From positions 682,001 to 746,000 of the forward strand of contig MCFH01000024.1 of NCBI GenBank assembly GCA_002104945.1: a DNA stretch of 64,000 nucleotides, given 5' to 3'. The notes under the pieces are model-generated. The model saw only the letters and a program-made list of their open reading frames with translations. It did no database searches and had not been told where the DNA came from. Of the stretch, positions 36,659-56,585 are shown piece after piece (positions within the stretch are counted from its first letter, which is position 1; each line of letters starts with the position of its first letter). This stretch comes from Piromyces finnis finn. Lineage: Eukaryota; Fungi; Neocallimastigomycota. Position numbers and translations under genes: made by a program.

Positions 36659-39600
36659 ATGGGTAATAATGAATCAAACATATATGAAAGTGAATATAAT
36701 GAAATCTTAAATTCGAGAAAAGGGAGACATGAATCCTTTAAATTTGACACTGGGAAAAGAACATTTAGAAGAAAATCAAGTACATTTAGTGTTATTAAAG
36801 TTGAAAAAACAAATGATTATGGAAATATATATATGGCAAATGATATTGACTTTGATAAAAATTCCCACAAGCTAAGACCAATATATTCCAATTTAGAATT
36901 ATTAAAATCTGATGATAAGAATTCAAATGAAAATTTGAATGAAAATCAAGGTGGTGCGAGTTCCAATAATTATGAAGGTTCTAATAATAATGAAAATTTA
37001 AATATAAATAAATTAAGGAATTCTGAAGGTGAAATTAATCATAAAAAAATTAATGAATTAGTGGAAACTTTTATGGTATTAAAAAATTGAAAAAATAATA
37101 ATTATTATTAATCTGATTTATATTTAGTATAATTAAACATCATAATATAAATAATAATATTTAATAGGATGAAATCAATCTTTCTCAAGATAAAAGAGAA
37201 GCTATTAGAAACATGTCAGATGAACAAAAGGTGCTTATGATTAGCTCACAAAGTAGTACTTCAACTGTATGTGTTTCTTTGCATTAAATACATTAATGTT
37301 AATCAAAATTATTATTTTAAAAAATATATATATATATACCATATAATTATATATTAGGAAATTTTATTTACTTTTATTTTTTATATTTTATATTACAATT
37401 TAAAAATAGAGTAATAGTGACAGAAAAGAAGAAGATGATGCTTTAAAATATATTCAAAAAATAAAATTAACACCAACATTGGAAGTTATTAAACATCTTT
37501 CTGTTTTACTTAGAACAAAGCCAATTAAATGGATAAATGATTTTGTTAATAATAAAGGTTTATCCATCTTACTTAGTAATTTAAATAATATTCAAACTGA
37601 AAGATCATCATATGAAGCAAAGTAAAATTTAAAATTAATTAAATAAATATACTAATACGAATAATAACAATAAAAGCAATAAAAATAATAGTTAATATAT
37701 TTATATTAAATGCTAACAACATAATTATATTTTAATTATAAAATTATAATTAGTATTGAGATTGAAGAAATATATATTAAATGCTTGAAATGTATTATGA
37801 ATAATAAGGTATAAATTTTTTTTTACTTATGGTACTAACAGTTTTATTTTTTATAATTATGAGAAAGATAAATATGAATATATGGGTATAACTAATATAT
37901 ATTATTTATTTTTTTAATTCAATAACAGGTCGGACTTCTTTCTATTATTCATTCAAAAGAATTTTTACCTATTATTTCAATGTCATTATATTCATCATCA
38001 CCAAAAACACAAGCTCAGGTTTTAGAAATTCTTAGTGCAATATGTTTCATTGAAGGAGGGCATCAATGTGTCTTAAATGCTCTAACAGAGTTTTCTGTAA
38101 TAAATAATGAAGTTTTTCGGTTTGAAATTATTTTTAGATGCTTAGAGTCCACTCTTAGAAATGCAAATGATAATGCCACTTATTTAACTAAAAAAGAACT
38201 TCAGGTAATTTATTTTTATTATTAGTAAATTAATTAAATGAGGAAATAATCAAATTTAATAGTACAAGGAATCTATATTTATATCTACATATTTTTAATC
38301 ATATTTTATAATACTAAAACTAATCAATAAATCAATAATAGTTGGCTTGTTTTTCATTCATTAATGCTATAATTTGTGGTATTCCAGATGAGAATATTGT
38401 ATTCAGAATGCATATAAGATATGAATTCATTACTCTGGGTATTGAGAGAATTATTAGTGTAATTATCATATTAATAAATTACAGTTATTAAATCAAAATC
38501 TAATAATCAAAAAAATTAATATTAAAGAAAAATTTCATAATACATATATTTTATTTACATTATATAGACTATTGAAGATATTAATGATGAAAGATTTTCT
38601 AATATAAAGAGACAAATTTTGATTTTTAAAGATTTAGCCGAAAGAGATGAGAAAGAAACATATTCAAAATTCACTGATTCTTCATTCGATATCAATAATC
38701 CTGATGAAATTTATGCTGTATTAAGAACAGGTTTGGATTCATCTTCATGTTGGCCATATTTTGTTGATATTTTAAGACACTTTTTGGTTATTCCTGGTAA
38801 TCATGAAACAAGGTATAAGAATAAAAAAACATTTTTTATTAACACTTTTTATTATGATTATTTCTTATATTATACTAATTTTTTAAATTATTTTTTACTG
38901 TTAAATAAAAAGAATGAGGTATTGGTTGATCATTTCAAAAATAATTAATCAAGTTATTATTCAAGAAGAAAATGGAAATCCTGATCCTGATAATGATCTT
39001 ATTAATATTAATATGAAAAAACTACTTCACGAAATTGGTATTTCAGAGAGAGCTAATGAAGCTATTGAAGAATTGAAAAAAGCTCGTGAAGCCTACAAAA
39101 AGAGAGAGAAATATTATGAAAATAGAATTAATACTTTAATAAAAGAGAATAGTAATAATTATTATAAACATATAAAAAAAATATTTATATTTTATTATTA
39201 TAATTTTATTTTAAAATATTTTAATTTCTAATTTTTATTATTCATTTCTTCATTAATAGATGAATATAAGGATTTAAATAAACAGTTTAATAGCATTTTA
39301 ACAGAATTACAACTTAATAACATCGTCGAAACAAATAAAAATAATAAATTAAAAATTAATGAAAATACTGTTAACGGAATTTTGCTTATTAATGATATAA
39401 AAAACAAAAAATCTGATGATGAAAATAATAATAAAAGCAATCTTTATGAATATATAAAATATACACCAATTCTAAGAGAGTTAGAATCATTGAAAATAAT
39501 AGAAAAGGATGATGAAGATAACTATCATATTATTAATAAAGATGGAATTAATAAAGCTAATATTGAAAAAGAATGTGAATCTAAGAATAGTATTGACAGT

Positions 39601-42600
39601 ATTTTAGATCAGTTAGAACAATACAAAATATCCAAATTTAGTATATTCAATGATGAAGATAATCAGGAAGCTAAATTTAATTATTTAATTAATGATATTG
39701 TCAATAACTTAGTCCATATGAAAATTATTAATAATGATAAAGAACACAATAAATATGAAGTTATAAATAAAGAAAAAATGGAAATTCTATTAAATACTTT
39801 AGAAAAGGCATCAATTATTCAAAAAAATAAAAATGGAAATTATTATTTCAATTCTTCAAACCAACCAGAGTTACTACTTTCAAATAATTCTCATAATGAG
39901 CAATTAAAAGTACAGATTTATGTTGAAGATCCAATAACTAAATCTATAGACATTAAGAAAATATGTAATGATGTATTATCCATGTTTTCAAAATGTGTTA
40001 CACTTGATGAAGATAGTTTAAATAATATCAATACGCAAGTTATATATAAAAGTCTTATCAATGTATTGAAAGTAATGAATCTTTTAGTTTATGAAGAAAA
40101 TCAAAGTTTCTTAAAGATTGGTGATACTAAAAAGTATTTAATTGATGAAATAAAAATAAAAGAAAGTATAATTGATGTCCTAAAATTATGCAATGTATTA
40201 GAAAATCCTGATAAAAATACAAAAGAAAGTATAAAATCCATGCAACATTTAGATATTATTCAGAAACATATTATCACTATAATAAAAAATAATCTTGTTT
40301 CTCTAAATAATAATGACTGCTTTCAATTTGATGTTAATGAATTATATAAAACAATTCTGGATTTATTAATGAAAAAAGAAATTATATATATGAAGAATGA
40401 CATCTATAAAATTAACACTATAAATAACTCGATTAGTAAAAATGAATTAATAGAAAAAATATTCGAATTCTTAACTGATAAAGAATTAATTACCAAAGAT
40501 AATGTTGGACAATATACTACTTTAAAAAAAACGATAGAATCTCACCAAATTAATATAAATAGCATTTGTGAAAGCATTATAAGTGTTTTAGAAGATTACA
40601 ATTATTTAACAGAATTAAACGACGGGTGTTTCAATGCTAATATTAAAAATAATAGTTTCTTCTTTATTGACAAAAATACATTATTTAAAGCTATAGTGAA
40701 TTTATTAACAAATAAGCATTTGATATATATAAAGAATAATGAGTATATGACTTCTAATGATAGTTTACAAGAATTTCCTTTAGATGATATATTTAATAAC
40801 ATTATTAATTCATTAAAATTTAGAAACATTCTTAAGATTAATAATGATAATGAAGAACAAATGGTGTTAAATCTTTCTTTTAATAGTAATGAAGAAATAT
40901 CAAAAAGTATTATTTATAGCAACATTAAGAATATGTTAATAAATAATAACTTATTGATAGAAGATAATAATCAATTATTAACACATGAATACATTATTGA
41001 AAGCTGCGCAATTTGTAATAATAAAATTAATTCAATATTAAAAATATTAGATTCATTAAAAATAATAAATTTGGATAAGAATAATTCAGATAATATAAAG
41101 ATTGTAAAGATTTTCAATAATAAAAATGAAATTTCTAATATTATTGAAATAATATTAAAAAAATTAATAAAAGAAAACAGAATTAATAGTTATAAAATAT
41201 TCTATGATAATGAAGTAATTGTAATGAATAAAGAGGATATAGAAATGAATAATGTTATAAAAAAATTATTAGATATTGGTCTAATTGATTATGATGATGA
41301 TAATAACTTTAATATACATATTAATAAGAAGCAAAATATATCAAATATTGAAAATACATTGATGAATAAAGATATGGAATTTTCATCAAGTTCTCTTCTT
41401 AGTACAACTTCTAAATGGAACGATGATGATGACGTATTATTAGATGAAGTTACAATTAAAAATTTAATGAGTAATGGAATTGTAAGTCTAGAAGATATTG
41501 TTGAAAAAATGATTACTTTATTAAAAGATAATTATGTTATTGACATTCCAAATAACAAAAATGGTTACATCAATATTGTTAATGGTATTATTCTGAATAA
41601 AAAAGAAACATTGTATTCTTTAATTGATTTCTTAATTGATAATAACCTATTAACATACGACAATGAAGGTAAACACTATCTAAGTGGAAAAACACATTAT
41701 AGTATACCTTTTAACAAAGATACTTTTAATGAAAAGTTCATGAATGCACTAAAACATTCTAATATGATAACTGAATCTGATCAGGGTGCTATTTTAAATG
41801 TAGATACTAGCAACTCAAGTATTATGATTGACATTTATACATTAATAATTGATATTATTGACCTTCTAAAGAACATGAATGTCATTAGTGTTAGTGATAA
41901 TAATAAAACCACATATATTTTAGATAATAATAAAAATGTAGATAAATCAACTATTAAAACTATTATGGAACAATATATCAAAAAATATAATCATCTTGCT
42001 TTGGAAAGTTGTGAAGCCAATAAAATTATAAATTGTGTAATTGATATTATGAAAGAAATAAATATCATTTCATCAATTGATTCTAAAAACTTTTCACTGA
42101 ATATGCCAACTATTTATGATTATAATTTTGATGTTATATTATTAATAAAAGAATTATTTAAATTTATTGAAGACTTATTAGGAAATGATGAAAAAGATAA
42201 AATATATAATCTTTCAATTGATATTATATTAGAACAAAACAATTTGAATAGTAATAATCTTGAATTATTAAAGGATAAAAAATATAGAATTCCTTGCAAA
42301 GAAACAAATAACCTCAAAAAAATAAATGAAATTTATATTCAATTTATAAACCATTTAAATGAAAAAAATATAATAGAATTTAATAATAATAACTATCAAT
42401 TAATATTAAAAAAGAAGACAATTAAATTTACTAACATTTTCAATTTATTATTAGATAAATTAGTAAATGAAAATGTTTTTGGTTTAAATGATAATGTATA
42501 TTATATAAAAATAAATAAGAATGATGCAATTGATATGCCTTTCATAAAGAAAAGTATTTTCAAGTTATTATCAAATAAAAGATCAAACATAACACTTTCT

Positions 42601-45600
42601 TCAAGGATGTTAAGTGAAAATAGTCTAGTAGACTCAATCAATAAATTAAACGATTCCATAAGTAATGAAAATTCAGTTATAAATATTTTAATGAATAATA
42701 ATCTTGTTAATATTAATGATTCAGGAAAATATAGTATTTCCAACTTAGTAAAACTCTTTACTAATAAAAACAACGATAATACTTGTAATGAAACTATATC
42801 TAATATATTTCTTCATATATCTTATTTATATTATTTTCTTTTTTTTAATTAGTCTATACTAAAAATAATTTTTAATAATATATATTAAATTGAAAATATA
42901 TTTAGGTAAGATGTCATCATCAAATTCATTGTCTCAACAACCAATGACATCGTTAGAAAAACTACTAAAACCACCACCTCCTCCAATGATAGGAGGAATA
43001 CCACCACCACCACCACCTCCTCCTCCAGGAGGAGTGCTACCTCCACCACCAATTCCAATGATAGGAGGAATACCACCACCACCACCTCCTCCTCCAGGAG
43101 GAGTGCCACCTCCACCACCAATTCCAATGACAGGTGGAATTCCACCTCCACCAGGTTTAATGAATGATAACATAATGCCCAAACGAAATCCATGTGTTCG
43201 CCTTAAATCATTCAACTGGACAAAACTTGATAACAGAAAAATTGATAGTACAATATGGAAAGAAATTAATGAAGATGAAAATAATACAATTCTTGACTCT
43301 ACATGGAAATTAAATATAGAAGAAATATTTTCAGAAAAAATTAAAACAAAAAAGGAAAAAAATAATGGAAATACAAATATCGACTCAAGTATATGATATT
43401 TTATATAATAAATTCAAAAATTATTATATAATTTATTTAAAAATTAATATATTTTTATTTTTTATTACTATAATATAATATATTAGACAAAAAGTCAAAG
43501 ATTACTTTCCTAAATAGCAGAAGATCTCAAAACATTGATATTGCTCTTAAAGGTATTAAATTAACTCCTGAAATAATTAAAACAGCAATATATGAGTGTG
43601 ATATTAATATATTATCACGCGACGCACTCACAGAACTAAAAAAACTTGTTCCCCAAGATGATGAAGTAATATTAAAAAGAAACAATATTATAATATATAT
43701 TATAAATTAGAAATAATTGATAATTTTCAATATTAAATAATCATATTAATTTTTATTATTAGATTAAATTAGTTAAGGAGTTTGAATCAAAAAAAGAAAA
43801 ATTAGCAAACGCAGAAAAATTCTTAATGGAATGTGTACAAATTGATAATTATTCAAATAGGTTAGATTCTTTATATACAAAAAGTTCATACGATGAACTA
43901 TACGATGATGCTAGTTCATTAATTACATCTATAAAAAATGCATCATTTGAAGTCAGGAATAGTTATAAAGTTAAACAACTATTATCAGTATGTATTAAAA
44001 CATTAACTAAATTATTAAACAATATTACAGCGTATTTATATTTTTTTCTTTTATTAATTATATTTATTTTCAGATCATTTTATCCATAGGTAATTATCTT
44101 AATACGGGTCAAAGAGGGGGCGCATACGGTTTTAAACTTAATGCCCTAACAATGATTATATTTACGAAATCATCAATAGATAATAGAAATTATTCATTAA
44201 TGAACTTTTTAGTAGACTTTGTTGAAACGAAATATCCTAGTTTATTAAGTTTAAGCGAAGATATGCCAAGTATTGTCGATGCTGGAAGAGGTAAAAAAAG
44301 AAAAATTTATAATTAAAAATGTAATTTTTTTATAAAGGAATTTATAAATTAATTAATTTTTATCAATATATAATTAATATAAAAAAAGTAAATATGAAGG
44401 ATATTAATGTTATAATGACTGATATCAATAAAAAATTGAGTGGTGTTAATGATACATTAAAAAAAATCAAAGAAAATTATCAAAAGAAGTTAAAAGAAAT
44501 TTTTTTAAACGATTTTAATGCATATTATGATTATATTAAAGATGAAATTGTAGACGAAATAGAGGAATTAAAATCAAAAGAAGATGAAGATAAAAATGAA
44601 AATAAGAATTCCAAAAAGAATAGATTTACATCCATATTAAAATTTGTAAAAAATAAGAATAAAAATAATAAGGAAAAGAAAAACAAAAAATCTAATGCTG
44701 AAGATGAAAATATAAATAATGACAATGAAATTGGAAATGAAAATCAAAGAGATAATGCTGAACTAATTGATGAAGAAAATATAACTGATTTAACAAATCT
44801 TATCACTGATGATGAAAAGGTTAAAAAAGAAATTGAAGAATATAAAATTGACACAACAAAAGAAAAATTCAAAACTGAAATTGTAAAGAGATTTAATGAT
44901 AAGTTCATATCAATTATGCAACCATTTTATGATGAATCAATCATAAATTATGAGAAATTAAAAAATCTATTAAAAGAAGCAAATGAAGATTTTGAAAATC
45001 TTTGTATATTATTTGGAGAAGATCCGGAAAGTACAGAACCATGTGAATTATTTACTTTATTTAATGATTTTTGGAGACAGTTCCAAGTAAGTATTATTAT
45101 ATATACATATATATTTTCTTTTACCAAAAATAAATAATTATATAAATAGTTTTATAAAATATTTAATAATATTAAAATATTAAATTAATTATAATTATAG
45201 ACTGCTAAAAAAGAAAATGCACTTTATAAAGAAAAGAAAGAAAGAGAAAAAGAAAGAGAATTAAAATTAAAAGAAAAGAAATTAATGGAAAAAGACAATT
45301 ATTCTCAATCCAAAAATATATCTGACCAAATTATTGATAACATTATTGATTCAATCCGTTCTGGAAGTGCTTTTGCTCCAAGTAAAAAGAAACTAAAACA
45401 AAATAGTAATGATGGTAATAGTAATGACAATAGCAACAGCATTAATGATAATGAAAATAAAAATAAAGAACAAGAGGTATTAAATGATGAAAAAAATAAT
45501 TCTCATTTAACAAATAATAATATTAGAAACCAATATAGATTCCAACAATTGCAAAATAGTTTGAATAATCTCACAAAACATGAGAATGCAACATCGTCCA

Positions 45601-45764
45601 ATGTTATATTAAACATGAAAGATGATAATAAATCTAATAACAAATTAAATATATGTGACTTTAATTCAAAAAGTATTATTGAATTATCAGCAATAAATAA
45701 TGATGTTGCTAAATGTTTGTGTAAAATTGCTGATAATGAAAAATGCAAAGATGTTGATATATAA
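36659..45764 (+). CDS. Diaphanous-related (DAAM-like) formin 1: GBD/FH3 - giant repeat insert - FH1 - FH2 - DAD, multi-exon
   Basis: GBD/FH3 [34 protein letters not shown] and YWLIISKIINQVIIQEENGNPDPD (DAAM-like). Poly-Pro FH1 at 42970-43155. FH2 LKSFNWTKL, RRSQNIDIAL, GNYLNTGQRGGAYGFKL and FTKSS. DAD IIDNIIDSIRSGSAF. Confidence 0.93.
39260..42784 (+). other. Giant intron-free exon of formin 1 encoding about 20-25 degenerate 35-41 aa helix + beta-hairpin repeats
   Basis: Open frame from acceptor taatag|AT GAA (39260), continuous with ORF 39382-42852. Recurring motif I/L-x-x-I-x-x-x-L-x-x-x-x-L/I-I-x(4-7)-Y-x-I/L-N. Likely donor ACT T|gtaatg at 42785. Confidence 0.8.
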
Positions 45765-47328
45765 AAAATTTAAAAAAAATATAACATTAATTTTTTTTAA
45801 TTATTATCATGCTTATCATGTTTTCATCATTAAAATTATATTTATTAAAAAAAAACAAATAAGTATGTAATATATATAACATTTATAATAAATATCTTTG
45901 AAATTTTAATAAAAACTGCTATTGTATAATTAAATTGTATTTTATATTTTATTCTTCCTCTTAAAAAGATTTAATTTACTTAATTTGAATATTAAATAAT
46001 GCGGTTCAAAACGATTGAACATAATATTTAGTTAATATATTGAAAATATTAAGATTTTTGTTTTAAGAAAAATGATTAATAAGAAAATTTTATAAATCTC
46101 CGAAACTGTAAAAAAAATTGAAATAATCATTTCTTTTCTTAAAATTTTAAAATTAAAATAATGTACAATAAAATTATCAATTTAAAAAAAAATTAAATAT
46201 AAATTTTCAGAAAATAAATATATCCTATTAATCTAATTTATGAAATAAATATATTTAAATGTAATGTGTTCTTTTAATTTTCTTCTGTTGTTTTAGTATA
46301 ATTTTTTATTATACATAAATTCTAAATAAATTTAAAAAGTAATATAATAATATTACATTTTTTTTTTTTTGTTTTTTTGTTTTTTGATTTTTTTTTTTTT
46401 TTTATTCATTTGTTTTTAAAAAATCTAAAATATTTACTAAATTAAAAAAATTATTAAACCTAAGTATAAATGATATTTACTTTAAACCAACATTTTCTAA
46501 TGTAAATAATGAATTTAAAATAGATAAAATTGAAATTTTATTATATAGTTAAATTTTAAATTAATAAAGTTTTGATAATTTCGACTTTCTTATTTAATTA
46601 AATTATGTTGTTTTGAAAAATATATATATATATAACCTATTATATTATTATTTTTTACTATTAAATTTTCTTGGAATAAATTAATAAATATTTTTTTTTA
46701 AAAAAAGGGAAATAAAAGTTATACTAATATACCCTTTATATATACATATATAAAAACTTTGTAATATAAACAAAATACTAATATAATATTTATTATTTAA
46801 AGGTAAATTTTTTAGAAGACATATTCATGTATATATATATAATTTATTGTAGTACATCAAATAAAACATCTATGATAATAGTATTCAATACAACCTGAAT
46901 ATAAAATATATATTTTTAAAATATATTTATAATTTCAAAATGATATTTTATAATATGAAAATCATTTAAAATGGGTTAGTAATACAGAAAAAAAAAAAGC
47001 TATATATGTATATATGTATATATATTTACAACCCTATAATATTAAAATAACAGAATAAATATAAAATTTAAAAATGTTTTGATGATACTTTCAGAGATAT
47101 ATTATAATAAATAGTATCACGGTTTTTAACATACTACTTGTCTTTATTAAAAAATAACATATACTAATGGAATTAAAAATTTTATATAATCATAAAAAAT
47201 TTTTAAACTATATACTAATAATACAAATTTATTAAAAGTCAAAGATAATAAACAGTTTGAATATAAGAAACACAAAGTATTAAAAAAATACAAGTACATA
47301 GGGTTTTATTTTATAGTTACTCCTCAAT

Positions 47329-49744
47329 ATGGGTAATGATAATTCAAAAACCTCAACTGAAGATGTTAGCCCAAAATCTAATATACATGGATCACATACT
47401 AATGTGAATTCAGGACATGGCCATAATGGTCATAAGAGAAAGAAGGATATTAAAGTAATTAATACGGAGGAAATTAGTCCAAATAGCCTAAAAATGGAAA
47501 ATAAACCTATGCCGCCAATAGATGAACTGGTACAAATGTTTGAATTATTAATGGTAATTTTACAGAAATTAAAATTAATATGTACATATACAATTTCTAA
47601 ATAATATATATAAATAATTTTGTAATATTATATAGGATGAAATCAATATTCCAAGTAGTAAAAAAGAAGATTTAAGAAATAGAACAAATGAACAGAAATG
47701 GATGATGATTCAATCACATATTAGTGATAGAGGAGTAATATATTAATAATACATATATATAATATTATATATTAAGAAAATATATAAATATTTAAATACT
47801 TTATAATAATATAATATTAAATATATTATTATTTTATAATTCGAATATGATTATATACAAAATTCATTTTATAATGTTATGTATACTCAAATAAAATATA
47901 CCAAAAAAAAAATAATATATATATATATAAAATTATATTATTAAAATTCGAAAACAAAAGGGAGGTGATCAAAAAGATGTTGTAGAATGTACAAAAATTA
48001 TTGAAGAAATTAAAACAGCACCAAGTGTTCAAAATTTAAAAAATTTAGCCATTTTATTACGATCTCAACCTATCAGTTGGGTTGCAGCATTTGTTGAAGG
48101 AGATGGTTTAGCTGTATTATTACAAAATCTAAGAGATATTAGAGAAGTGGAATATGAGTAAAATATTAATAGGATTAGTTATAATATTATTATTTATAAA
48201 TATATATTAAAAAATAATAACAAAATATATATTTATAAATTATTATAATTATTTGTTAAAATAAAAAATAAAGAAAGAATACTGAATTAGAAGAGCTATA
48301 CATTAAATGTTTGAAATCTTTCATGAACAATAAAGTAATAAATAAAAAGATTTCAAATTTGAAATAATTATTTAATTAACAACCAATATTATATATTACA
48401 TATATATAAATAGATTGGTTTAACTGCTATTATAGAAACTCCAGAATCTTTGCTTACCATTACTATGTCATTGCTCTCACCTTCATCGAGAACACAAGCA
48501 CTTGTATTAGATATTCTTAGTGCTGTCTGCCTTATTGCCCATGATAGTACTTTAAAAGCAATTACTGATTTTTCAGAACAAGTTAGGGAATTTCATAGAT
48601 TTGAAACCGTTGTTCATTGCTTAGAAAAAACACTTCACCATAAAGATGAAAGAAGTGAAATTGCTGCTGCTAAAGATTTACAAGTAAAATATATGTTTTT
48701 TATTAAATAATTTAAAATTATATTATATTATTCATAATTTTCTTATATCGCAAATTATATTTTATAATAAACTAATATGTATATTGGAATATAATATTAA
48801 AAAGCTGGCTTGTCTTTCTTTTATTAATTCAATTATTTGTGGTGTAAGTAATAATGATATTGAATTCAGAATGCATATTCGTTATGAATTTCTAACTTTG
48901 GGGATTGAAAATGTTTTTGACGTAAGTATCATAATAAAAATATAAATAATAATTATCATTCAAATAATTTTTAATTTATACTATAATATTTACATTTACA
49001 TATATTTATTGTTATAAATACCATTATAATTAAATATATTTATAATAATTTACAGGCTATTTCTGAAACTAGTGAAAACAAATTGGTTCATACTCAAATA
49101 GATGTTTTTAGAGATGTTATGGAAAGAGATGATGAACAATTATATAATAAATATGAACTTAAAATAAAGAACATGGATTTAGATAATCCATCTGAAGTAT
49201 ATAAAATTTTAGAAAAAACTTTAAGGAATACGAACTGTTGGGCTTATGTAATTGACGTTTTCAAACATTATTTATTAATTCCTTCAAATACAATGTTAAG
49301 GTATTGTTTAATTTATAAGAGCATAAAATTAAATATTTTATAAATTTTTAAATATAATTAAATATAATTTTATATTTATTTAAAATAAATTATCATTTGT
49401 ATACTGCGTGATTATAATTTTTAATCAATATAAGAGCAAAATATTGGCAGATTATTTCTAAATTACTAACACAATTAGTATTACAAAAAGAAAATGAAGA
49501 TCCTGATCCAAGTCAAGCTCTTATTCATATAAATTATAAAACAATTATTAATGATCTGGAAGATGACAATAAAGCGAATATTTTAGATCTTAAAGAAGAG
49601 CTAAAAAAAGCAAGAGAAGCAAATAAAAAAAGAGAAAAGGACTATGAAAATCAAATTGAAGAATTAAATAAAAATATGAGTATGTAAAATTCATTTCATT
49701 TAATTTTCATTTTCATTTTATATATTATCCATTTATAAAATAAT

Positions 49745-49775
<31 letters not shown>

Positions 49776-52700
49776 TATTTATGAAAATTCTTCATTAAGA
49801 AACAACAACTGAGGAATTAGATGAGTACAAAAAATTAACAGGAGATAAAAAAGAATTGATTTCAATATTAAAAGAGCAAAATAATAAATATGAAAAATTA
49901 TTAAAAGAAAAATTTACAAATGCAGAAGAAGCTGAAAAAATTATTGAAAAAATAAAAACTGAATTCAAGGGACCATTAACAATTGGTGTATCATTAAAAG
50001 ATATGAAGCCAAATGAGTCTAGCACAACACCTGTTGCTCCTACAAAAATTGGTGCTTCAGCTCCTCCTCCTCCACCACCACCTCCAGTTGAAGGAGGTGT
50101 TACCCCACCACCACCACCACCTCCTCCTCCAGTTGAAGGAAGTATTACTACTTCTATACCTCCTCCTCCACCAAATCCAATGGGTTGCACTACTAATGTC
50201 CCACCACCACCACCAATGCCAGGTATGGGTGGTGCTCCACCACCTCCTCCACCAATGCCAGGTATGAGCGGTGTTCCTCCTCCTCCACCAATGCCAGGTA
50301 TGAGCGGTGTTCCTCCTCCTCCACCAATGCCAGGTATGAGCGGTGTTCCTCCTCCTCCACCAATGCCAGGTATGAGCGGTGTACCTCCTCCTCCACCAAT
50401 GCCAGGTATGAGCGGTGTACCTCCTCCTCCACCAATGCCAGGTATGGGTGGTGCTCCTCCTCCTCCTCCAATGCCAGGTATGGGTGGTGCTCCTCCTCCT
50501 CCTCCAATGCCAGGTATGGGTGGTGCTCCTCCTCCTCCTCCAATGCCAGGAATGGGTGGTGCTCCTCCTCCTCCTCCAATGCCAGGAATGGGCGGTCCTC
50601 CTCCTCCTCCAATGCCAGGTATGGGTGGTCCTCCTCCTCCTCCAGGATTTGCCCCTCCTCCTCCAATTCCAGGTATGGGATATGCAGCTTATCCTGGAAT
50701 GATGATGAATAACGGTATTTAACATGTTTAAATTATCAATTAACAAGATTTTCATATAATATTAGTTTTTTATAATTTTAATTAATAATATTTATATTTA
50801 AAAAATTAATAATAATAAAAAGGTTTACCTCAAAAAGTTTCAAGAAGAACTCCTGGTGTTAATTTAAGAGCATTGAATTGGGTAAAATTGGATAATGCTA
50901 TGATCAGTAAAACAATTTGGAAAGATCTTGACGAAAAAGATATTGATAAAAACTTTGATAATACATGGAAATTAGAATTCGAAACAATTTTTGCTTCAAA
51001 GACTGTTGGAGGTACTAAAACTGCAAAAGATCAAACTGTACAAGCACGTAAGAATACAAAAAAAAATTATTTAGTTTATATTAATTAAAGCTTTTAACGA
51101 ATAAACATTATTATTTTTTTCTATTTTTCTATCTTCATTTAGCTAAAAAAGTTGAAATTACTTTCTTGGATGGAAAACGTTCACAAAATTGTAGTATGTA
51201 TTTATTCCTCTTTTTTCTCTCACTTTCTCTTTAAATATATATATATATTTAGGATATTATTTATAACTTCTTAAAAATTAATAACTAATATGAATTATCT
51301 ATTAAAAAATAAGATATTATGTTAAAGCATATTAAGCTAAATCCTATTGAGAAAATTGTCCAAATTATTTATGAATGTGATGAAACCATTCTTACTAAAG
51401 ATTTGATCTTAGAATTACAAAAATTCATTCCAAGCAATGATGAGGTATATTAATATCAATTATTTAAGTAAATATATATTTAATGATTTTTATTAATTTA
51501 TTTTTTTTATTTCTTATGATATGTGCCATACTAAAATTTAAGGTTAATATGATTAAAGAAAATATTGCAAATAAAGCACAAATGGCAACGGCTGAAAGAT
51601 ATTTAACAGAATGTTCAACAATCAGTTTTTATGAAGATAGATTAAAAGCTTTATATACAAAATATTTCTTTGATGAATTGTACGATGATGCAAGTTCAAT
51701 GGTTACATCATTAAAGGGTGCAACTAACGATATAAAGAATAGTAAAAAAGTCAAGGAATTATTAAATGTATAAATCTTTCAAACTTTTATCAAAATATAT
51801 CAATCTCAAGAAGATTAATCAAATACTAATAAATATTTAATATTATTATTTATTATTGTTGTTATTTATCTTAAAAAAATTTAAAGATTATTTTATTATT
51901 AGGTAATCATTTAAATACTGGAAGAAGAGGAAATGCCTACGGTTTCAAATTAGAAAGTATATTAAAATTAATTGATACTAAATCTAATATGGATGGTAGA
52001 AAGTATACATTACTTCACTATTTATGTGATCTGGTTCAAAATAAGTTCCCTGAGTTATTAAATTTACATGAAGAATTAACTAACATTGAAGAAGGATCAA
52101 AAAGTAAAAATAAATATATTAATAGTATTATTATATTCATAATCACTTATATATTACATTTATTTTTAATAATTGATATTATATAAAAGTTACTATTCCT
52201 GATATTAGACAAGTACTAACTTCTATAAGAGTTGGTTTAAAGGATGTTGAAACAGCATTAAATAAGATTGAAAAGGCTAAAGAATTAAAAAAAGAAGAAC
52301 CTCCATTCCCTGATAAATTCCCTGATATGATGCAAGATTTCTATAAAGAAGCAAAAGAACATTATGACAAATTAAATAAACAATTAGATGATGTTGAAGA
52401 AAACTATAAAGATTTATGTAATAAGTTCGGTGAAGATCCAAGTAAAATGTCTCCAGAAGAATTTTTCGGTATATTTAAAAACTTCTGGAACCAATTTCAA
52501 GTAAATATATTAATGACAATGAGATTTTATAATTTATTTTCAATTATAAAGTATATTTTTCTAATAAAATAAAAATTATTATTAATGAAATAAATAGCAA
52601 GCGAAAAAAGAAAATGAAGTATATGATGCCAAGAAAAAAGAGGAGGAAAAGCAAGCCAAGAAAAAAGAAGAGCAAAAGCAAGCTAAGAATAAGCGTAATA

Positions 52701-52981
52701 AGGCAGTACAAGATACTAAAGGATTTACTGATGAAATTAGTGATGAAAAAGAACATTCACCAACTGGAAATAAGGTTGAAGAAAAAGCTCTTGATGATAT
52801 TATTAACTCCATTCGTACTGGTAGTGCTTTTAATTCAAGCCCAAAAAAGAAACCTGGTGCATCTTCTCGTGTAGGAGATAAAAAAGACCCAACAAGAATG
52901 AGCGCTAAAAAATTACAAAGTGTGGATGCCCCAAAAGATCAAACCAATAACGTAGCTAAATCAGTAAATTTTCAAGCTTAA
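47329..52981 (+). CDS. Diaphanous-related (DAAM-like) formin 2: GBD/FH3 - FH1 - FH2 - DAD, multi-exon; tandem paralog of formin 1
   Basis: [17 protein letters not shown]|DEINIP...EQKWMMI (DAAM-like GBD), [31 protein letters not shown] and [24 protein letters not shown]. Long FH1. FH2 [15 protein letters not shown]|[21 protein letters not shown] and [24 protein letters not shown], ending NFQA* at 52981. Confidence 0.95.
50201..50630 (+). repeat. 36-bp coding tandem repeat forming the FH1 of formin 2 (PPPPPMPGM[SGV/GGA] x12)
   Basis: atgccaggtatg recurs every 36 nt (e.g. 50291 and 50327). There are 12 PPPPPMPGM units in blocks of GGA, SGV x5, GGA x4 and GG x2. Confidence 0.95.
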
Positions 52982-54517
52982 TGCATCATATAAAGATTTT
53001 AGTTTTAAGATTTTTTTATATTCATTATAAAAATTTTGTAATGTTAAAATAATTGATCTATAGTCAATTTAAATTATAATTACATTCATATATAATAATT
53101 CATTCAAACTTTTAAATTTCAATTCATTAATTCCACAAATATTACTAAATATTACATAATATGTAATATAATATAAAATACTGTATAATGATGCATCAAT
53201 AATTTTGTTTTTAAAGACTTAATAGATTTACATAAAAATTAATTTAAATATCTTTAAAATATATATATATATGATTTAAACAGAAATATGATATTTTTAT
53301 GACACCAATTCCATAATAAATTTTATTATCTAATTATTTAATAGAAATAGATATATTGTAAACAAAAGAAAAAATATATATATTTTAATACTCATATACA
53401 AAATTAAGTTTATTTTATCTTAATAGTTTTAATAAATAAAATTTATTATATTATTTCTTAACCCTTTCGAGGTTCCATTAAAATTGAAATATTTTAAAGT
53501 ATAAAAGTATTAAGAACTCATATTTTATTTTATTTTATATTTATATCTTCATTATTTTTATTTATTATTTATTATATAAATACGTATTATCACCTAATTT
53601 AATGTAAAATTATAAATTAAATAAATATACACTAATAAAAAAAATTGATAGACTAATAATAATGAACTATTCAAAATCAAGCAATCTATTATAATCACTA
53701 CTAGCCCATTCTCTAAATTTTTTCTTATTACATTTTAAATTTAGTACTTCAATTATGTATTTCCTGAAACATAGATAGTTGAAATTCTAAAAAAAAAGAA
53801 AATAGTATTTAATCTTCCGAACTACACTTTCCGTCAATAGACGTGCTAACTCTAAAGTTCATGGCATGAAAATTTTATATCATTAATGATACTATTTTAG
53901 CATTTTAGAATTAGAGAGATATACCATCAATAATATTAACTTCCCACAAACTAAATGACCCGCAAACTTGTCACCTTCGATAGCATATTATTATTATAAA
54001 AATCTTCAATATAAAATTTTCTAGAATGAGTATTAAATATAAATGAAGTTTCTTTTGGTATTAATAAATATACAATTATTATCGATTAACCCATTAACTT
54101 TTAATAAAACTCCATGATAAATAAATTCAAAGTTATTAAAATATAATATAGTATCAAAATATGAAATTATACAAATCACTTTTAAAATAAATACAACGTT
54201 TTTTTTAATTACTAGAAGAGGTATATTTAGAATCCTTAATATTTAAAAATTAATATTAAAAAAATTATTAATCAGAAGATTCCAAATTAGCCTAAATTAT
54301 TAAAAATACTAATAAAAATTGAAATATATAATATTTCATTTATCATAATCCTAAAATACACAATCTATAATGTAATAATATTTAATATAAAAATAAAAAT
54401 AAATAATTTATAAAAGTTTATTAAACTATATAAAATAAATTTACTAATTCGATATATAATAAAATATATATATATAATATAAATAATATATTATACATAT
54501 TTTTTTTTCTTTACTAC

Positions 54518-56585
54518 TTAAAAGTCAACATCCATTGAATCTGTACCAAAACTAAATATTTGATTTTCATTAATTTCATTATATAGATTTGTAGTTGTTG
54601 TAGTTACTGTTGGGATAGTATTATTATCATAATTTTCAGTGCGTGGAAAATCTTTTTTATAATCAAATAAATCTGTATAGGAAGTTTTATTTAATTCAAT
54701 TTTCATATTATTAGGTTTATAATTTTTTATAGTATTTTGTAATTCTGTGTTATTTCGAGATATTACATTCATTAATGCTGATGAAGTAATTGGGGAAGGT
54801 GATGTAGAAAAGGATGAAGATGATGAAATATTACCTCCATACAAATGAGAAATTTCTTGAAAATATGGTATATCAATTTCTTTACGATTAATTGAGGATA
54901 AAGTTAACAAATTATTATCAGTATTCATTAATAAAGGTGATGGAGATATTGGAGATATTGGAGATATAACACTTGTATTCATGCATGAATTTGAATTGTT
55001 GTTTTGATTTATGGGTATCGAATTTGACGAATTATAAGGATTATTTAATTTATCAGGGGATTTATTTAATGAAAGAAGTGGTAATTTATTTGTAATTATT
55101 GCAGAAGTTGGAGTGGATGAATTAGATACATTATTTATATCACTGAATGAATCTTGATTTGAAATATTATTATTTATCTTTATCATTAAATCATTTGAAG
55201 GAATATTATTTTTATATGATTTATCATCATTTATTCCTGATAATTCCTGTAATGTCTGTTTCCAGGAAACTGGCTTAAATAACACTACTTCACCTCTAAC
55301 TGGTTCATATTTATCCTGTTTTGAAATTGGGGAATAATCGGAATATTCAAATGTATTGCCATCATTATTTAATATAGGAGATCGATATGGACTAAAAATA
55401 GATTTCTTTTCATCAATTTCTTTAGCAAATGTTGAATAAGGTGGATCTGAAGAATTTATACCTAAATTCCAGTGGATATTTCTATTTCTAACTGAAGTAG
55501 GTAAATTAATAATTAATTTTGAATTCATTAATTTTTCAGTTGAATATATATCTTTAATTTTTATAGCAAAATTAAAAAAAAAAAAAAATAACGATAAATG
55601 AATAAATAAAGATTTTGATATTATTCAATTATAATTATAATTAATATTATTGGTATGGTTGTTATTATATTGAATTATTTATATTTTCATCATTATTAAG
55701 TTACTAACATATTAAAAATACTAAAAAAATAATTTTGAAAATTAAAACTAAAAAGTATTTACCATTTATTTCTTTAAGGTTACTTTCTTCTTCTTGTGTT
55801 AATTTACTTTTAGATTGTTTGATTTCAGATATTGGTGATGATGAAGGTATAATGTTATTAGTGTTGACTGATTCATTAAAGTTCAATGAAGATAATAATG
55901 ATAATGATGAAATGTCAGAAGGTGAATTATAATCTTCTTTAATGGAAGATAAATTACTATCAATTTTGCTTCTATTAATAGATGATATTGACGAAAGGGA
56001 GGAAAATGAACCATCATCAGATTTTAAGAGCGATGAAGGTAATATAGGTGTAGATGAACGAACTGGAAGGTTTACATGTCGTTTTGGATTCGGTGTTGAA
56101 ATTGCTATAGGTGTTGAAATAAATACGGGAGACGTTGACGATGAATCATCCTGTGACGAAATAGTGTCTATATTAGTATTAACTTTTATTGATTTGTGTG
56201 AAGGCATAAAAAAAGAATCATTATCATCATCAAATTCATATGAATTATTTAAATCTAATTCCTGAGAACCATTAAGATATGAAGAAAAAGTATTATTTTT
56301 TACTTCATTACTATTAACAATATTCTGTGAAGAAATGGTATTTTTATTGTTTTTATTTGTATAGGATATTTGTAAATTATCATTAGATCTTTTTAAATCT
56401 GAAGTACTTAAATTATAAAAAAGTCTCCTTCTTTTAAAATGTTTATCTCTTTTATTTTGTTGATTAGGGATATACTCTTCATCACTTAGTTTGCCATCCT
56501 CATTAAAAGTAAGTTCATTTTCTATTTCATCATCATCTAAATAATGAATTAAATTTCTTCGAGTTTTTGTAGTATTTTCCGTCAT
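54518..56585 (-). CDS. Hypothetical Ser/Asn/Pro-rich, probably disordered protein (two exons, about 600 aa)
   Basis: ORFs 55704-56585 and 54518-55528 join in frame through intron 55762-55552 (AAT G|gtaaat...ttaaag|AT ATA TAT). The sequence is low complexity with many SP/TP motifs. No domain was recognised. Confidence 0.7.

Follow-up and report, generated by a model that had tools for sequence, protein, structure and literature searches.

Formins are usually described as proteins in which a regulatory N-terminal half is joined by a short linker to the FH1 and FH2 domains. The locus studied here raises the question of what a single exon of 3,525 nucleotides (nt), placed where this linker is expected, adds to such a protein. 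It lies in a 64,000-nt stretch of the genome of Piromyces finnis (contig MCFH01000024.1, positions 682,001 to 746,000; hereafter the window, whose own coordinates are used throughout) that contains a tandem pair of formin genes, A and B. The exon belongs to gene A (36659-45764, about 14 exons) and occupies 39260..42784; both genes and the exon are on the + strand. An earlier note on this DNA, made from its letters and their translations, had described some 20-25 winged-helix-like repeats encoded by an internal formin exon. The observation was confirmed by the present analysis and the interpretation was supported in part. What emerges is a protein of a known kind, a Diaphanous-related formin, which carries an insert of new, conserved and probably folded repeat modules.

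Position and predicted splicing of the insert exon

The length of the exon is a multiple of three (3,525 nt = 3 x 1,175), its phase is 1 at both ends and it holds 1,174 full codons, which encode about 22-25 units of a helix and a hairpin each. Read from position 39262, these codons contain no stop in DNA of about 20% GC, where roughly one stop per 10 random codons is expected as estimated from the base composition. The exon is flanked by introns at 39152..39259 (+) and 42785..42905 (+, phase 1), both with GT..AG ends and both at positions and in phases that match introns of two orthologous loci, L001 and L005. On the upstream side the predicted donor ...GAGAATA/GTAATAAT and acceptor ...TTAATAG/ATGAATAT (the slash marks the splice point) give a join that reads ...LIKEN-N-EYKDL..., and on the downstream side the donor ...AATACTT/GTAATGAA and acceptor ...ATTTAG/GTAAGATG lead in frame into ...CKMSSSNS...KPPPPP. 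The frame is therefore kept through both joins, to the coiled-coil exon on the 5' side and to the poly-proline FH1 exon on the 3' side. With Drf_GBD and Drf_FH3 matches upstream and FH1-FH2 downstream, the exon holds the internal position between FH3/coiled coil and FH1 that had been proposed for it. In each of the three species it is symmetric (phase 1-1, length divisible by 3), and its skipping would therefore preserve the frame and yield a short formin like paralogue B.

Sequencing runs of the same organism were searched for sampled words of the region 38600-43400, of which the insert exon makes up 73%. The RNA runs X1, X2 and X3 contained 0.78, 0.47 and 0.43 of these words, respectively. 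The intergenic DNA at 45850-47250 was found at 0.06 in X1 and 0.05 in X2, and at 0.97 in the DNA run X5. Because the RNA runs cover the region of the exon but hardly the intergenic DNA, the insert exon is present in RNA.

The insert is an array of diverged repeats

A de novo motif search, seeded at every third position and scored leave-one-out, found 18 sites with 170 bits in the insert, as against 49-82 bits in 10 shuffled copies. The internal repetition is thus real. Likewise, when tiles of the insert were matched to each other 44 pairs reached at least 25 bits, compared with 7.3 +/- 4.6 in shuffled copies. The motif of 22 amino acids (aa) has the consensus s-[IVL]-[IVM]-x-x-[LF]-x-x-x-[NG]-[VIL]-[IVL]-x-x-x-D-n-G-x-[YF]-x-I. 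After refinement with the two orthologues its matrix detected 22 sites scoring 12 bits or higher in the protein of the window, and 20 of these have leucine at position 6; under the same matrix and at a lower threshold of 4 bits, shuffled sequences contained 0.57 sites on average and never more than 4. The best control for composition was provided by the window itself, in which the other six-frame open reading frames (ORFs) are equally AT-rich: nowhere in their 27,202 aa did the score reach 10 bits.

From one copy to the next the distance is 29-39 aa, and the wider gaps contain weaker copies, as judged by reading and from the secondary structure of the model. The hydrophobic autocorrelation showed no sharp period (z ~2.3) because this spacing is irregular. 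If the weak copies are counted by eye, together with the approximately 25 helix and hairpin elements of the AlphaFold model, a total of 20-25 units is a fair estimate, which agrees with the earlier count; all nine of the repeats that had been offered as examples are present at their places. A hidden Markov model seeded with these nine recovered them and one weak copy. Being too tight and circular, it was replaced by the de novo search with its shuffles. An interpretation of the units as decoys of DAD or WH2 was considered and rejected, as the matrix scored below 10 bits on the formin's own DAD and everywhere outside the insert, and a reading of the sequence showed no basic motif of the LKKV type after the helix.

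The composition of the insert is extreme (N 16.5%, I 14.7%, K 11%), with 16% GC at codon positions 2 and 3. About 39% of its residues are hydrophobic. It is acidic, with a net charge of -31 and an isoelectric point of 5.2, and its orthologues have net charges of -29 and -17.

Four-unit blocks and their predicted fold

Comparison of three-species profiles with hhalign revealed a higher-order unit that the earlier note had not described, namely mutually homologous blocks of about 150 aa with four units each. Block Q (insert residues 356-505; 40327..40776, +) aligned with block B (residues 741-890; 41482..41931, +) over 138 columns with a probability of 94% and an E-value of 1.3e-7, and with block E (residues 1019-1170; 42316..42771, +) over 139 columns with a probability of 95% and an E-value of 4.8e-8. 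Block C (residues 508-657; 40783..41232, +), whose four units are more degenerate, aligned with Q over 128 columns with a probability of 61%. As the four-unit blocks align over their whole length, the array grew through their duplication. It is split by a hinge rich in serine, aspartate and asparagine (residues 686-740; 41317..41481, +), which was delimited in the alignment, has no regular secondary structure in the model and is where the largest indel among the orthologues falls.

When the whole insert was modelled with AlphaFold2 on a five-sequence alignment the result was poor (predicted local distance difference test score, pLDDT, 41) and too poor for use in a fold search; approximately 25 elements of a helix and a hairpin were still visible. 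Block Q was modelled on an alignment of 22 in-register, non-overlapping blocks (A3), an alignment of overlapping four-unit windows (A2) having been useless for this purpose. The resulting model is compact (pLDDT 82.7, predicted template-modelling score 0.78) and consists of four 14-residue helices, each followed by a hairpin, with a third strand ahead of the fourth helix. This suggests that four units together make up a compact predicted fold.

No significant structural match to block Q was obtained in PDB with Foldseek (best E 0.1, template-modelling (TM) score 0.34), in the AFDB clusters (best E 0.06), in AFDB Swiss-Prot (best E 0.05) or in the ESM Atlas (best TM 0.41). Alignment of the block with 48,161 chains by VIA-align reached a best Z of 5.5, which is below the stated noise level of 7-8, and a feature search of the ESM Atlas gave a best score of 0.56 and no lead. 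At the level of sequence, the window insert matched no Pfam profile at E <= 10, the orthologues had chance-level Pfam matches only, and a search of PDB sequence profiles returned nothing better than E 0.09-0.56. The suggestion that the array may represent a new repeat fold is thus in keeping with the block model and the fold searches.

Relatives and evolution of the insert

A first homologue search with the whole insert gave nothing, probably because low-complexity words crowded the candidates, and phmmer was used instead. Exhaustive comparison with 1.84 billion representative proteins returned three relatives of the insert only, P0001 (50% identity over 1,021 aa), P0002 (41% over 1,153 aa) and the fragment P0003. 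All are on JGI metagenome contigs of about 19% GC, on which the insert ORF is flanked by Drf_GBD and FH2 pieces. A metagenome scan added the contig of P0003 only (L009, a fragment that represents a fourth lineage), and a profile of the block matched none of the proteins of 82-262 aa. Since these searches found no other carrier, the known occurrence of the module is limited to this one formin orthogroup and four lineages, which answers the question of its occurrence in other proteins and taxa that had been raised with the first description. The lack of relatives beyond the orthologues among the 1.84 billion proteins, together with the lack of a match in PDB, AFDB or the ESM Atlas, makes it a candidate new domain family or fold.

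The orthologous exons (L001, 3,201 nt; L005, 3,606 nt) are open throughout, keep the intron positions and the 1-1 phase and lead into a poly-proline FH1. Insert length varies by about 110-135 aa between species, and in L001 the array is shorter by some 110 aa at its beginning. Apart from this, the sequences align collinearly, with a small number of indels, across more than 1,000 aa. At 50% and 41%, the identity of the insert to its orthologues is near that of the variable N- and C-termini, whereas GBD, FH3, coiled coil and FH2 are 70-92% identical. Inside and outside the motif the identity is the same. Hydrophobic residues remained hydrophobic at 83-86% of the positions between orthologues. 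The rate of nonsynonymous substitution (dN) was 0.33-0.49 and that of synonymous substitution (dS) about 1.1-1.3, which is near saturation, giving a dN/dS of about 0.3-0.45. As judged from these sequence comparisons, the insert is under relaxed purifying selection, exerted chiefly on its core. The frame open in three species, the excess of dS over dN and the retained hydrophobic positions bear out the view that the protein is under selection.

Formin gene A and its tandem paralogue

The window has a GC content of about 12-23% outside a single G+C-rich FH1 repeat. Its genes are read with the standard genetic code and are interrupted by short introns with GT..AG ends. By our estimate formin A has a length of about 2,500 aa. 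Its first coding exon (36659..37087, +, 3' end approximate) was identified as an ORF that begins with MGNNES, which fits MGxxxS, the consensus for N-myristoylation. An MGN-x-x-S start is shared by all four formins (window 36659 and 47329, L001:1485 and L005:34), which suggests that they may be membrane-anchored formins of the Diaphanous type. The Diaphanous GTPase-binding domain follows at 37410..38222 (+) in two coding pieces split by an intron (Pfam Drf_GBD, E 4e-11 for profile positions 60-127 and 7e-6 for 149-188). The FH3/DID exons at 38342..38850 (+) match Drf_FH3 (E 2e-8, profile 85-161) and are 69-92% identical to the orthologues. The coiled-coil exon at 38932..39151 (+), about 81% identical to L001 and L005, ends with ...TLIKEN at a phase-1 GT donor at 39152.

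On the other side of the insert, the exon at 42906..43393 (+) encodes both the poly-proline tracts of FH1 (PPPPP tracts at 42906-43200, with a weak Drf_FH1 match) and the start of FH2 (Pfam profile 4-62), so that a proline-rich FH1 directly precedes FH2. The rest of FH2 is encoded at 43474..45134 (+), with collinear matches to profile positions 71-133, 131-208, 203-274 and 277-372. In all, five consecutive exons cover positions 4-372 of the FH2 profile (PF02181) in order, with a best E of 4e-19. Between profile positions 274 and 277 the FH2 of formin A contains an insertion of about 130 aa, partly rich in lysine, asparagine and glutamate (44394-44790, +), which can be aligned to both orthologues, L001 and L005, though not to paralogue B. 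In the last exon a DAD-like motif, IDNIIDSIRSGSAF, is followed by the basic tail APSKKKLK (45333..45398, +). It is a predicted element recognized by reading only, IDNIIDSI-RSGSAF-APSKKK, in which isoleucine replaces the M and L of the consensus MDxLLxxL, as cited in a study of chytrid formins (bioRxiv 10.1101/2020.06.12.142943). Paralogue B and both orthologues, L001 and L005, have kept the motif. Because GBD, FH3, FH1, FH2, the DAD-like motif and the MGNNES start were all found, gene A is assigned from its sequence to the Diaphanous-related formins.

Formin B (47329..53000, +, end approximate) is the tandem paralogue without the insert and has a long FH1 repeat. Its coiled coil is within about 50 aa of FH1, in accordance with the short linker that had been attributed to it. 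Its domains are 35-67% identical to those of formin A, which indicates that paralogue B arose before these species diverged. The FH1 of B (49856-50722, +) consists of about 15-20 tandem PPPPPMPGM(G/S)G(A/V) units, and this G+C-rich array lifts the local GC to 0.34 compared with about 19% in the genome. Downstream of formin B two Ser/Asn-rich genes (54518-56585, -) are 42-47% identical to L005:12165-14200 (-). In L005 the Ser/Asn-rich gene pair directly follows the orthologue of formin A; this lineage thus lacks the tandem paralogue B at this position.

Possible roles of the array

The explanation that we prefer, with a probability of roughly 0.55, is that the insert forms a folded, acidic and modular stalk or scaffold between the N-terminal half and FH1-FH2. 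The exon encodes approximately 25 diverged units, each an amphipathic helix with a short beta-hairpin, grouped into about 7-8 blocks of around 150 aa with four units each, and the array is split by one flexible, acidic Ser/Asn-rich hinge. In this way the FH1-FH2 head, where actin is assembled, may be held tens of nanometres from the N-terminal dimerization region, which is predicted to be Rho-regulated and is probably membrane-anchored. Docking of partners to the array would be secondary. A stalk is favoured because the insert diverges fast, its conservation is limited to the core, its length varies by units and its module is absent from other proteins.

Several points weigh against this explanation. 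The role of a stalk is inferred from anatomy and evolutionary rate, and a specific binding function would leave much the same sequence signals; the myristoylation of formin A, like its function as a stalk, is a prediction from sequence. The whole-array model is poor (pLDDT 41). The alignment behind the model of block Q mixes paralogous blocks with orthologues, which may inflate its confidence, and this model was judged on its scores and secondary structure rather than on a view of how the units pack. The splice junctions are predicted from GT/AG sites, the frame and the introns of the orthologues, not from reads, and the insert exon, being symmetric, may be a cassette exon that part of the transcripts leave out.

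The main rival is a multivalent docking platform, in which the modules would bind specific partners, for instance factors for polarity, vesicles or cell-wall synthesis, and would thereby localize the formin or assemble a complex. Yeast formins such as Bni1 carry partner-binding regions between FH3 and FH1, and by analogy the position of the insert matches that region of the fungal formins. The predicted folding of the modules, the collinearity of the array in at least three lineages with few indels, and segments between the motifs that are conserved as much as the motifs themselves would all be expected of such a platform. Yet the insert evolves fast relative to the rest of the protein, what is conserved is mostly hydrophobic core with no invariant surface motif that recurs across the units, the number of units differs between species, and neither phmmer nor the block profile found a related module in other proteins. 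Sequence alone does not separate docking from the stalk, and we regard docking as the less probable of the two, at about one chance in four. More doubtful is a tolerated and largely neutral expansion of an AT-driven linker rich in asparagine, isoleucine and lysine, without a fold of its own, comparable to the low-complexity inserts of other AT-rich genomes. The extreme composition, the low-confidence model of the whole array and the fast evolution of the insert are consistent with it. It does not account for the absence of the motif from ORFs of the same composition, for the retention of hydrophobic positions in a sequence in which they are so frequent, for a collinear alignment over more than 1,000 aa and a frame open in three species, or for the confident model of the block.

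Two further explanations are improbable. If the units were winged-helix-like and bound nucleic acid, the likeness of the motif to a recognition helix with its wing, and the prevalence of winged-helix proteins among the weak structural matches, would be explained. These matches are at noise level (Z <= 3.6, TM <= 0.34, E >= 0.05), the unit is too short, no winged-helix family of Pfam was matched, and the negative net charge of the insert and of both orthologues makes nucleic-acid binding unlikely; the proposal of a nucleic-acid-binding arm in the earlier note is therefore not favoured. Equally improbable is that the ORF lies outside the formin mRNA, either as a nested gene in its own right or through a mis-joined gene model. 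This would fit with junctions that are predicted from sequence and with the stand-alone ORF given by metagenome gene callers, but the ORF has no conserved start codon and its first in-frame methionine varies by species. Moreover, its end in every species is a run into the intron past a conserved GT donor, intron positions and phases with the frame into FH1 are kept in three species, and the start of the exon continues the coiled coil and is by eye homologous to paralogue B.

An extended and more speculative proposal is that the four-unit block is a new fold and domain family restricted to one clade of anaerobic gut fungi, and that the array serves as a molecular ruler, or as a length switch operated by alternative splicing of the symmetric exon, which sets the distance of the actin of a myristoylated formin from the membrane, for example in rhizoid or zoospore structures. 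We consider this tentative. Anaerobic gut fungi break down plant biomass through invasive growth of their rhizoids, and to our knowledge their cytoskeleton is almost unstudied; a full-text search found no literature that pairs the whole word 'formin' with 'anaerobic fungi'. A conserved and folded insert of 1,070-1,200 aa would be a natural experiment on the distance between anchor and barbed end, and on mechanical coupling, in actin assembly.

Comparison with known systems

The likeness to winged-helix domains is that of an amphipathic helix which ends in [NG]-hydrophobic-hydrophobic and is followed by a hairpin with an aromatic residue, as are the recognition helix and wing. The weak Foldseek matches were mostly to winged-helix proteins (eS19, CRP/NtcA, SelB WH2-4, cullin WH-B, eIF2D, MCM8 and Fur). 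On re-alignment they were at noise level, and none of the solved winged-helix domains was a significant structural match (best Z 3.6 against the stated noise of 7-8). No winged-helix family profile was matched in Pfam at E <= 10, and the PDB profiles did not go beyond the E-values given above. A winged-helix unit has three helices and a wing of two or three strands in about 60-100 aa. The units of the insert, in contrast, are 29-39 aa apart, show a single helix with a single hairpin in either model, lack the H1-H2-H3 bundle and are acidic. The resemblance is thus local, confined to helix and wing, and membership of the family is not established; of the winged-helix-like character first ascribed to the repeats it is this local part that stands.

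With the solenoid repeats (ankyrin, TPR, HEAT/ARM and LRR) the insert shares short tandem units, a hydrophobic pattern, fast divergence and a variable copy number. Ankyrin repeats have 33 aa, TPR 34 aa, HEAT/ARM about 40 aa and LRR 22-29 aa. The unit of the insert differs in that it is predicted to be a helix with a hairpin, is irregularly spaced, and appears in fours that close into a compact module instead of an open solenoid. None of the known tandem repeat families (ANK, TPR, LRR, HEAT, ARM, PPR and others) had a Pfam profile match to the window insert at E <= 10, and an ankyrin-like spacing of the motif, which was considered, found no support in Pfam.

Compared with the Diaphanous-related formins (mDia, DAAM and the chytrid Diaphanous-like proteins), gene A has all the defining domains in the usual order. 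It differs from them in the repeat modules of about 1,170 aa between coiled coil and FH1, where they have a short linker, and in the insertion of about 130 aa that its FH2 carries. FHOD and Delphilin are formins with additional domains N-terminal to FH1, and the PTEN-formins and the transmembrane class I formins of plants likewise have extra domains ahead of FH1, usually for localization. The architectures described for chytrid formins are GBD-FH3-CC-FH1-FH2-DAD, where CC is the coiled coil, and a PTEN type, and domain shuffling N-terminal to FH1 is reported as common in formins; in its accessible part this survey contains no such repeat array and no term beginning with Neocallimastig- (bioRxiv 10.1101/2020.06.12.142943). 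Within the same limit, and given the blank Pfam, PDB-sequence and fold searches, the view that no described formin or known domain matches the module is upheld. Formin A thus resembles the formins with extra domains before FH1 in the place of its addition and differs in its nature: theirs are known domains, and its insert is a repeat without a family, found so far in four related lineages.

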